Below, piece after piece: positions 30,151 to 43,059 of a stretch of DNA of 64,000 nucleotides (the first letter of the stretch is position 1; each line of letters begins with the position of its first letter). The notes beneath the pieces are model-generated. The model worked only from the letters and a program-made list of their open reading frames with translations. It ran no database searches and was not told the origin of the DNA. A program made the position numbers and the translations under genes. The stretch is from Hemiscyllium ocellatum (Eukaryota): contig NC_083417.1 of assembly GCF_020745735.1 (NCBI RefSeq), positions 72,230,001-72,294,000 of the forward strand, given 5' to 3'.

Positions 30151-30196
30151 ATGATAATGCTTCAGCCAATGTTGGTGCTAGAGATGATTTGGACAG
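30151..30196 (+). CDS. VJ-C1 receptor exon 1, leader MIMLQPMLVLEMIWT(A)
   Basis: 46-nt phase-1 exon with CAG|GTATTT donor, 150-nt intron, in frame with the V exon. Confidence 0.85.
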
Positions 30197-30346
30197 GTAT
30201 TTTCTGAAAAAAAAATCAATTTTTAAAACGGTCTTTATATTTATTCCTGCTAGACTGTATCATTCGATATATGAGAAGTCTTCAAGTCATATCTGAATGT
30301 TGAATTAATAGAATGCATTATTTTTCTCTCTCACTTTCTTTGAAAG

Positions 30347-30664
30347 CTTTTTGCTATTTCCATTTCCGAGTGTCACAGACTCCCCAACACGTTATTCTAA
30401 ATTTCGGAGAACGTGCAACAATCACCTGTGCGTTCAACATTCCACCTGATGATTCCGAGGTCGATGTCTTGTGGTGGAAATTGGGTGATAATACATTTCT
30501 GCATCCAACCTCCGACGCTAGGAAACGGCATTTTAAGAGAAAGGGTCAGGGCACCTTACAGCTGCTTGACGTCCATCTTGAAGATGCTGGAGTTTATTAC
30601 TGCGGAGTCAGTCAGAATAGAGCAACGATCAGCAACGGGACTGGAACAAGACTTGTTGTCCACA
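30347..30664 (+). CDS. VJ-C1 receptor exon 2, V-set Ig domain with joined J-like strand (NKp30/SIRP/antigen-receptor-like)
   Basis: FRVSQTP..ATITCAFN..LWW..TLQL..LEDAGVYYC..NGTGTRLVVH; pyrimidine tract plus AAG acceptor; CA|GTAAGT donor; phase 1-1. A second in-frame acceptor at 30370/71 is possible. Confidence 0.95.
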
Positions 30665-30824
30665 GTAAGTGTCACTGTAGGCGAAGGAATTCTTAGAAAT
30701 CTTGACAAGATTATTTCGCTGATTAATAATATTAAAATACATTCTAAAATTGGTTGAAAACAAAAAATGTTCATAATCTCAACATATCAAGCAGGCCCAG
30801 AGCTTACGTTTCCACTCTGGAACA

Positions 30825-31660
30825 AAAAAACAAAGAAAATTACAGCACAGGCACAGGCCCTTCGGCCCCCCAAGCCTGGTCCAATCCAGATCCTCTATCT
30901 AAACCTGTAGCATAATTTTCAAGAGTCTGTATCTCTCTGCTCCCTGCCCATTCATTCTCTGCCCATCTAGATTCTTTTAAATGAAACTATCATGCCCACC
31001 TCTACCACCTCCACTGGTAACACGTTCCAGGCTCCCCACCCCCCACCCTCTGTGGAAAGAACTTTCCGCCATTTCTCCTGAAAATTTTCCACTCTCACCT
31101 TGAACTCGTGACCCCTAGGAATTGAGTCACTCACTCTGAGAAAAAAAGCTTCTTGCTATCCATCCTGTCTATACCTCTCATGGTTTTGTCGACCTCAATC
31201 AGGTCTCCCCTCAACCACCATCTTTCTAATGAAAATCTATTCAATCCTTCTAATCTACTCAACGTCTCTCTGCATAGCTAGCACACTCCATACCAGGCAA
31301 CATCCAGGTGAACCTCGTCTGTATCCTCCCCAGAGCATCCGCCGCCTTTTGCTAATGTGCCAATCAGAACTGTACTTAGTTTTCCAAATGTGGGGGAACC
31401 AAAGTCTTACACAACTGTAACATGACCTGCCAGTTCTTATAATACCCCGTCAGCTGCAGGAAAGATTGCCATATGCCTTCTTGACCACTCTATCGACCTT
31501 CTTTGCCTCCTTCAGGATGCACTGGACCAAAACACCAAGATCTCTCTGGACATCAATTGTCCCCAGGGCTTTACCATTTACCATAAAGTTCACTCGAAAC
31601 CTGGATCTTCCAACATACATCACCTCACGTGAATTGAACTCCCTGTGGTTCCTACAGACT
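30825..31660 (-). mobile_element. CR1 LINE 3' fragment in intron 2
   Basis: Reverse-complement CR1 3' end and RT C-terminal motifs. Confidence 0.75.
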
Positions 31661-41600: not shown

Positions 41601-42384
41601 ATATGGGAAAAGAACCAGACTCCGAAATTGTGTGCTGTTTCCTCCTCTCATCTCACAGAAACTTTGTTCAGCCCACAAAACATTGAGTAAAATTCCACTG
41701 ACCTACATGAGGCAGGTCAGTAAGTTCAACAGTCACAAATGAAGACAACAGTTGTCACCATAATCAGTGTTGTGAGAATCAGTAAACAATGGTTATCCTG
41801 CAAGTAGAACAAGGAGAATAAGTGGGAATTCATAATACACATGGACAAAGATACCAAAACCATATAACTGACTAGTGGGCAGAGAACAGAGACATTCAAA
41901 ATGCATTAAGGTTGAGTTAAAAGTCAGTGAGTGGAAGATGAAATGACTGACAATAGATACTCCGTTATAGTGAGATTTTCATGTATAATAAAATAATGAA
42001 CAGGGCACCAAAATGGCACCTACTCACATTTAGGGAGTAATAATCATTAATATGTCCATTGCCATTTTGCAGTGCGCATAGGAAAGTATTGATTGCACAA
42101 AATAAATAGATATGCATCGATCTTGAATGAAAGTCATCTTCAGCAATTTAGAGACAAGATTTTGTCGACTCCCAGTGGAAGGCAATGCTTTAACTTAAAA
42201 GACAAAGAATCGTGTTATGGAATAAAAACACAATGAGAGATCACTTGTTTTAATCTTGTGTGCGAGGTCACCCAAGTTTAACGAAAATAATTTGAGTCAA
42301 GAAAGGTACATGACTGTTGCAATGCTAACATTAACAGATTTTCTTTTGTTTCTGGCTTTGGATGTACCTGAGTTTATGTATTAA

Positions 42385-42591
42385 ACGGAGAAAGTGAGGA
42401 CTGCAGATGCTGGAGATCAGAGCTGAGCTGAAAATGTGTTGCTGGAAAAGCGCGGCAGGTCAGGCAGCATCCAAGAAGCAGGAGAAACGACGTTTCCTGA
42501 AGAAGGGCTCATACCCGGAACGTCAATTTTCCTGCTCCTTGGATGCTGCCTGACCTGCTGCGCTTTTCCAGCAACACATTTTCAGCTCAGA
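42385..42591 (+). mobile_element. Fold-back Penelope-type element with hammerhead-like core
   Basis: ~70-bp inverted arms around CTGAAGA-AGGGCTCATACCC-GGAA-CGTC; 11-bp repeat ttatgtattaa at 42374-84 and 42592-602. Confidence 0.7.
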
Positions 42592-42900
42592 TTATGTATT
42601 AAGCACCGAATAACTGATAAATCTTTCTTGATGCACTGATCGTCGAGACTACATTTTAGGACTTGTGAAATATGAGCAGGTAGTATGTTAGTTCCAAAAG
42701 GTTTCATATTGTTTGATGCAATTATAAAATGTAATGATGTTCTACTTTCAGCATAAGTATCACATTAATAACTACAGTTAAATTCAGACCAACATAATAT
42801 GATGAACAACAGTTTGCAGCCAAAATGCTTAATGTTTATATTTAATGATCTAAAAACTAATGGAATAATATTGGACTAATAAAATTCCGAATTGTTACAG

Positions 42901-43059
42901 ATGCTGGAAATGACTGAAGACAACAACGTGGGTTATGCAGCTCTCACTTTGTTTAGTTCAGAAAAAAGACGGACGCACAGGCAACAGGAAGACTGTACAC
43001 AGTATGCTGCAATTAAGACAGGCATGGATAGATCGCGAGATTTATCCAAAAAGACTTAA
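42901..43059 (+). CDS. VJ-C1 receptor exon 6, ITIM plus ITSM-like tail
   Basis: ttacAG acceptor, phase 0: MLEMTEDNNVGYAALTLFSSEKRRTHRQQEDCTQYAAIKTGMDRSRDLSKKT*; candidate ATTAAA at 43523-28. Confidence 0.85.
   Translation: MLEMTEDNNVGYAALTLFSSEKRRTHRQQEDCTQYAAIKTGMDRSRDLSKKT

Follow-up and report, generated by a model that had tools for sequence, protein, structure and literature searches.

A non-rearranging V-C1 gene with an ITIM-ITSM tail in the epaulette shark, a probable inhibitory member of a SIRP-like paired receptor family of cartilaginous fishes

The inhibitory receptor SIRP-alpha consists of an N-terminal V domain with a J-like strand, two C1-set domains, a single-pass transmembrane (TM) segment and a tail with two pairs of tyrosines of the immunoreceptor tyrosine-based inhibitory motif (ITIM) type, and belongs to a paired family with charged-TM activating members. 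NKp30 (NCR3) has a non-rearranging V domain as well, whose J-like G strand bears an N-G-T sequon; it has an arginine in the TM segment, which serves pairing with CD3-zeta or FcR-gamma, a single Ig domain in the ectodomain, no C1 domain and neither an ITIM nor an immunoreceptor tyrosine-based switch motif (ITSM), and is encoded in class III of the major histocompatibility complex (MHC). B7-H6 (NCR3LG1), other B7 proteins and butyrophilins have an extended V-C two-domain ectodomain. The VJ-C1 layout is that of immunoglobulin (Ig) light chains and T-cell receptors (TCR), whereas the shark VNARs are short V domains without the C'' region that are rearranged and somatically diversified. Germline-joined V and C1 domains occur in the shark proteins UrIg and UrIg2, non-rearranging relatives of antigen receptors that bear on the origin of the latter (PMC12227049, PMC10751288), UrIg2 with ten Ig domains and forming disulfide-linked homodimers (PMC12227049). 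Here we describe a gene at positions 30151-43059 of a 64,000-nucleotide stretch of the epaulette shark Hemiscyllium ocellatum (contig NC_083417.1, positions 72,230,001 to 72,294,000, forward strand; below, the window is this whole stretch). It encodes a germline-joined type I V-C1-TM protein with an ITIM and an ITSM, and is likely to be a conserved inhibitory receptor of a SIRP-like paired V-C1 family of chondrichthyans.

The open reading frame (ORF) listing and direct reading gave an ORF resembling a V domain (30313-30696) and one resembling a C domain (32051-32443), and a hydropathy scan gave a TM-like stretch at 37.9 kb. The complete gene is a single plus-strand gene of six exons with AG/GT borders and phases 1, 1, 1, 1, 0:

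30151-30196, plus strand: exon 1, the ATG and most of the signal peptide, with a phase 1 end and a GT donor; conserved in whale shark.
30347-30664, plus strand: exon 2, the end of the leader and the V domain with a fused J-like G strand, with an AG acceptor and a GTAAGT donor.
32091-32402, plus strand: exon 3, one C1-set Ig domain.
37875-37985, plus strand: exon 4, the stalk, the uncharged TM helix ILAIGCTISGLICLVLGAVIG and a juxtamembrane stretch that is basic and rich in Cys; phase 1-1.
38591-38628, plus strand: exon 5, 38 nt, the cytoplasmic spacer GPNQDTARHCEET (13 codons), from phase 1 to phase 0.
42901-43059, plus strand: exon 6, the tail with the ITIM and the ITSM and the stop codon TAA.

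The spliced coding sequence of 984 nt encodes 327 amino acids and has no internal stops. The phase 1 end of the TM exon does not fit the phase 0 start of the last exon, so a small exon must lie between them. Eighteen candidates for it were listed, 16 of them of 38 nt. The exon at 38591-38628 was chosen, as its product matches GPNQDMARQCEET of Chiloscyllium plagiosum and GTNQDAPRPCEEM of whale shark, where the AG/GT borders are also kept. Alternative candidates, for instance 41932-41969 and the ITIM-like 42648-42682, have no match in the orthologues and were rejected. The resulting protein is identical, residue for residue, to the RefSeq prediction XP_060693841.1 ("signal-regulatory protein beta-1-like", Hemiscyllium ocellatum, 327 aa), whose gene spans 12,909 bp corresponding to 30151-43059 and is placed on the 84,986,831-bp record of GCA_020745735.1. 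The gene is intact, the agreement of the exon model with a real gene is far beyond chance, and the model is already public in RefSeq.

An earlier note on this stretch had proposed an uninterrupted six-exon gene with this span, canonical borders, these phases and lengths and the layout leader, VJ, C1, TM, ITIM, ITSM. All of this is confirmed, including the non-rearranging architecture and the SIRP-type tail, which carries one ITIM-ITSM pair. The 38-nt exon was not explicit in that note and had to be fixed via the orthologues. The placement of the ITIM and the ITSM on separate exons did not hold, as both are encoded by exon 6. Nor is this the hidden or unique gene that the note implied, given the identical RefSeq model and the many V-C1 paralogues in cartilaginous fishes.

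Exon 2 is recognized by the Pfam profiles V-set (1e-9) and ig (3.3e-10). The landmarks of the domain are Cys43, Cys101, the WW pair at 58-59, the YYC motif and an N-glycosylation sequon at N112. The G strand NGTGTRLVVH corresponds to a J-like segment fused to V; it has a Gly-x-Gly bulge and includes the N-G-T sequon. The AlphaFold2 model of the V domain (pLDDT 88) has strands A, A', B, C, D, E, F and G. The C' and C'' strands are not predicted in it (exon residues 45-58), and the domain is shorter than a full V domain. No recombination signal sequences were found near the V exon, and heptamer-nonamer matches occur in the window at chance frequency. As V and J are encoded in one exon without such signals nearby, the gene does not rearrange.

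Exon 3 encodes a C1-set domain (Pfam 3.6e-13; 130 bits with the hidden Markov model, HMM, of the family) with Cys146, Cys203 and the motifs FYP..IT.NWYKN and YICLVSH. Its matches in PDB are constant domains of Ig, UrIg2 and MHC class II. A second C1 exon was not found between the V and TM exons by a scan with the family HMM, in agreement with the RefSeq model. The model of a full-length orthologue consists of a signal helix, the V and C1 domains, a TM helix and a disordered tail. Among the orthologues, variation in the ectodomain is greatest in the FG loop and the C-D loop (mean column identity 0.48 and 0.61) and least in the B, F and G strands (0.86-0.90).

The TM helix contains no charged residues, which excludes pairing with adaptors of the DAP12 or FcR-gamma kind. 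There are no cysteines in the stalk and no evident interchain cysteine. The cytoplasmic tail, 71 residues after the TM helix, contains the ITIM VGYAAL (Y287) and the ITSM TQYAAI (Y310), 23 residues apart. Such a pair at this spacing would suit docking of the tandem SH2 domains of SHP-1 and SHP-2, a mode known from SIRP-alpha, PD-1 and PECAM-1. Among eight aligned orthologues the first motif has the core YAAL and the second the pattern T.YAA[IV] in all other full-length tails except that of Scyliorhinus. The uncharged TM segment is kept in all full-length orthologues that have the TM exon, with the same exception.

Orthologues were found in eight other shark genera from five orders. Their identity to the window protein is 90% in Chiloscyllium, 75% in Rhincodon, 71% in Stegostoma, 54% in Heterodontus, 50% in Mustelus, 49% in Heptranchias, and 48% in both Pristiophorus and Scyliorhinus. 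In the maximum likelihood tree of 42 family ectodomains, where Heptranchias was left out, the orthologues form a clade with support 100/100 and a long stem, and branch broadly as the shark phylogeny. The whale shark locus is collinear in all six exons, which have identical lengths and AG/GT borders, and its translation equals the NCBI model (P0152). The ratio of nonsynonymous to synonymous substitution rates (dN/dS, Nei-Gojobori method) in comparison with whale shark is 0.39 for the whole coding sequence: 0.26 for the V domain, 0.59 for C1, 0.44 for the stalk, TM and juxtamembrane parts and 0.61 for the tail.

The gene has numerous relatives. An exhaustive HMMER search with the V exon yielded 98 proteins at E <= 1e-10. 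Below giant multi-Ig proteins in the ranking, the top single-domain matches are proteins of 230-450 amino acids with the layout V-C1-TM. By a motif scan, the majority of the matched proteins have the strand NGTG[ST]xLxV together with the C1 signature Y.C.V.H. The gene fits this family signature: its V domain contains NGTG[ST]xLxV, and its C1 domain, followed by the TM segment, contains CET..FYP..IT..WYKN and Y.C.VSH. The family was found in sharks, rays (Mobula, Hypanus, Hemitrygon, Pristis, Narcine) and the chimaera Callorhinchus. Its members are of two types, long-tailed with ITIM and ITSM motifs and short-tailed with an arginine in the TM segment, which is the pattern of a paired receptor family. 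The gene is one conserved, probably inhibitory member of this large and poorly described family. No paper on the chondrichthyan V-C1 family was found in the searchable literature; an earlier account under another name is possible.

The automatic names of the family members are diverse: SIRP-alpha-like, SIRP-beta-like, PTPNS1-like, Ig lambda-1-like, tapasin-related-like, CD276 homolog, NCR3LG1-like, TCR-beta-like, PD-L1-like and MHC class II alpha-like. For one sawfish gene, the V-only isoform is named NCR3-like and the V-C1 isoform SIRP-alpha-like. Isoforms with and without C1 are predicted in Heterodontus (P0114/P0118) and Pristis (P0074/P0165), the V-only ones being NKp30-like and named so automatically.

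Comparison of the whole protein with Swiss-Prot structures by Foldseek places SIRP-alpha first (E 8e-17, 15-18% identity, with the alignment reaching into the tail), followed by CD276, butyrophilins, PD-L1, B7-H6 and Ig lambda. One possibility is that the gene is a true co-orthologue of tetrapod SIRP, either reduced by the loss of a C1 domain and a tyrosine pair or still in an ancestral shorter form. This would agree with the top structural match and with the NCBI names of the gene and many of its relatives, SIRP-like or PTPNS1-like. Outside cartilaginous fishes, the family profile matches only lungfish SIRP-like proteins, the sole bony vertebrate matches; one of these has 32% identity to the V domain and 23-27% to C1. 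In addition, half of the SIRP-alpha tail, ITYADL ... TEYASI, resembles the motif pair of the gene. However, there is a single C1 exon, the V domain is shorter and lacks the C' and C'' strands, the identity to mammalian SIRP-alpha is low, and the automatic names are inconsistent, as Ig lambda, tapasin-related, CD276, B7-H6 and TCR beta names occur in the same family. Thus we consider co-orthology with SIRP rather unlikely, and prefer a SIRP-like family of cartilaginous fishes whose probably inhibitory member, by architecture and tail, appears most similar to SIRP-alpha.

The earlier note had also called the V domain NKp30-like. When the V domain alone is compared by Foldseek with Swiss-Prot (550,129 models), CD79b is first, followed by Ig kappa V regions, and NCR3 of rat, macaque and human has ranks 4, 5, 6 and 14 with 25-28% identity. 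In PDB, shark VNARs are at the top with 24-32% identity; the NKp30 structure 3NOI has rank 12, with CD79b nearby. Thus NKp30 is indeed among the best structural matches, but the similarity does not appear to be specific, being level with CD79b, Ig kappa V regions and VNARs, and the V domain of the lungfish SIRP-like protein is 32% identical. The F-G segment alone best matches rearranged Ig and TCR VJ regions, and NKp30 is absent among the 60 matches listed. It is likewise absent among the 60 matches listed in the other PDB sequence searches. Other searches were less informative. The V ORF of 127 aa had no match in a word-indexed protein search, for which single exons are poor queries owing to its length filter and its requirement of shared words. 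Sequence and profile searches of PDB with V or C1 were dominated by multi-domain Ig proteins and gave no ranking of NKp30, SIRP and B7-H6, and a search of the ESM Atlas returned generic V-set clusters only.

A gene of the NKp30 family, whose NKp30-type V domain is joined by a retained or acquired C1 domain and inhibitory tail, would account for these NCR3 ranks and for the NCR3-like name of the sawfish V-only isoform. Human NKp30 also shares the GNGTRLVV strand with its N-glycosylation sequon. On the other hand, the ties with other V domains and the result for the F-G segment speak against it, and the gene has a C1 domain, an uncharged TM segment, an ITIM and an ITSM, none of which are found in NKp30. 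The chromosomal location may point in the same direction. White shark chromosome 19 carries five NCR3 genes between AIF1 and DDAH2 (Verissimo et al., PMC10751288). The family members of catshark are on a 198.8-Mb record, whereas the last listed gene of the MHC chromosome ends at 163.4 Mb; those of sawfish are on a 53.95-Mb record, whereas the MHC chromosome 34 is about 19.8 Mb long. Judging by these record lengths, which come from catshark and sawfish and not from the epaulette shark, the family probably lies elsewhere than on the MHC chromosome, which holds the class III NCR3 genes. Membership in the NKp30 family is therefore very unlikely.

For the ectodomain, VIA-align ranks B7-H6 first (Z 16.9, 192 residues, 24% identity), and then B7-H3, PD-L2 and butyrophilins, and several orthologues are named NCR3LG1-like or CD276 homolog. 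This could mean that the protein is a B7-like ligand rather than a receptor. However, 24% identity is no better than that to Ig light chains, and a J-like G strand with Gly-x-Gly is a usual feature of VJ domains in receptors. Moreover, the conserved ITIM-ITSM pair at SHP-type spacing and the sister genes with TM arginine are hallmarks of paired receptors. A purely B7-like ligand is thus highly improbable.

UrIg2 provides some of the good matches of the C1 domain, but the gene encodes only V and one C1, without an evident interchain cysteine and with an inhibitory tail. Ig light chains and TCRs share the VJ-C1 layout, whereas here V and J form one exon without recombination signals, there is no CART-type charged TM segment, and the tail contains an ITIM and an ITSM. 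The short V domain resembles VNARs, but is fixed in the germline. Overall, the family is roughly equidistant from NKp30, SIRP, B7-H6 and Ig/TCR, and the gene is best described as encoding a probable inhibitory receptor of the paired, SIRP-like kind within the Ig superfamily.

The inhibitory receptor that we prefer may act as follows. The V domain would bind a cell-surface or soluble ligand, chiefly by the BC and FG loops. Src-family kinases would phosphorylate both tail tyrosines, the tandem SH2 domains of SHP-1 or SHP-2 would dock on the ITIM-ITSM pair, SAP-type adaptors might dock on the ITSM, and activating signals in the same cell would be damped. Short-tailed paralogues with TM arginine would provide the opposing activating signal. 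The reading frame survives skipping of exon 4, as it has phase 1-1, and isoforms without the TM exon but with the tail in frame are predicted in Chiloscyllium plagiosum (P0157) and Pristiophorus japonicus (P0156). Thus a soluble form, which in-frame skipping could yield, is possible.

Several points weigh against this reading. Expression of the gene is deduced from automatic gene models. The identity to any characterized receptor is 15-32%, so that the likeness to SIRP is architectural and is not proven orthology. Where SIRP-alpha has two C1 domains and two tyrosine pairs, this protein has one of each. The evolution of the tail is fairly rapid (dN/dS 0.61). Finally, the first place of B7-H6 in the VIA-align comparison leaves a small chance of a role as a ligand.

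Three further features related to the gene were found in the window:

30052-30123, plus strand: putative core promoter, about 30-100 nt upstream of the ATG, predicted from motifs.
28664-28939, minus strand: inverted partial duplicate reaching from the promoter through the leader exon and intron 1 into the first bases of exon 2, with 302 nt aligned at 80% identity.
58514-58801, plus strand: decayed C1 exon of a dead paralogue (tblastn 4e-5, family C1 HMM 8.8e-16), with two in-frame stops and both cysteines lost.

The putative promoter contains an Ig-type octamer ATGCAAAT at 30052-30059, TATAAAT at 30094-30100 and the inverted CCAAT box ATTGG at 30119-30123. TATAAAT and the ATTGG block are both conserved in the whale shark orthologue, where the octamer has 7 of 8 positions. 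The RefSeq isoforms of Chiloscyllium begin further upstream, at an in-frame ATG that precedes the promoter motifs; this could reflect either an artefact of the models or a second start site.

The inverted duplicate has lost its splice donor by a 12-bp deletion, and no V, C1 or other Ig reading frame of a head-to-head paralogue was found downstream of the inverted promoter copy; thus it is a relic. No V exon matching the decayed C1 exon was found in the window, and nothing recognizable as an inhibitory-tail exon was found at 62036-62393 by tblastn with the tail of the gene and by three-frame translation. These adjoining dead relatives, the promoter-leader relic and the decayed C1 exon, could suggest that the gene itself is silent or a recent pseudogene with a frame that is still open. 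However, orthologues from different shark orders retain the open frame, all splice sites and the signalling motifs, and the dN/dS ratio is less than 1. There is hardly any chance that this explanation is correct.

Intron 3 contains a repeat of about 310 bp at 37115-37430, similar in appearance to short interspersed elements. Its copies are interspersed on both strands with 70-90% identity between them (3795-4079, 16472-16784, 16810-17150, 21850-22139, 59473-59765 and others). ORFs resembling fragments of reverse transcriptases and endonucleases of long interspersed elements were observed between the receptor genes at 26402-27094 (plus strand) and 48187-50108 (minus strand), and at about 51.2-51.9 kb there is a low-complexity, CT-rich stretch whose GC skew is strongly negative.

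The gene itself adds little to the automatic annotation. The inconsistent naming in RefSeq means that the family needs a curated name. The conservation of the gene indicates that SIRP-style inhibitory signalling modules are old. A speculative and quite unlikely scenario is that the family is a survivor of an ancestral non-rearranging VJ-C1 receptor, from which SIRP arose by duplication of C1 and NKp30 by its loss, the short VNAR-like V domain being perhaps near the source of single-domain shark receptors. It is prompted by the NKp30-like isoforms and relatives without C1, by the equal distance to NKp30, SIRP, B7-H6 and Ig light chains, and by the VNARs as top matches in PDB. In current models of the origin of antibodies and TCRs, non-rearranging VJ-C1 genes are the raw material, and a conserved inhibitory VJ-C1 receptor found across shark orders in a paired family is a data point for the debate on the origin of antigen receptors.

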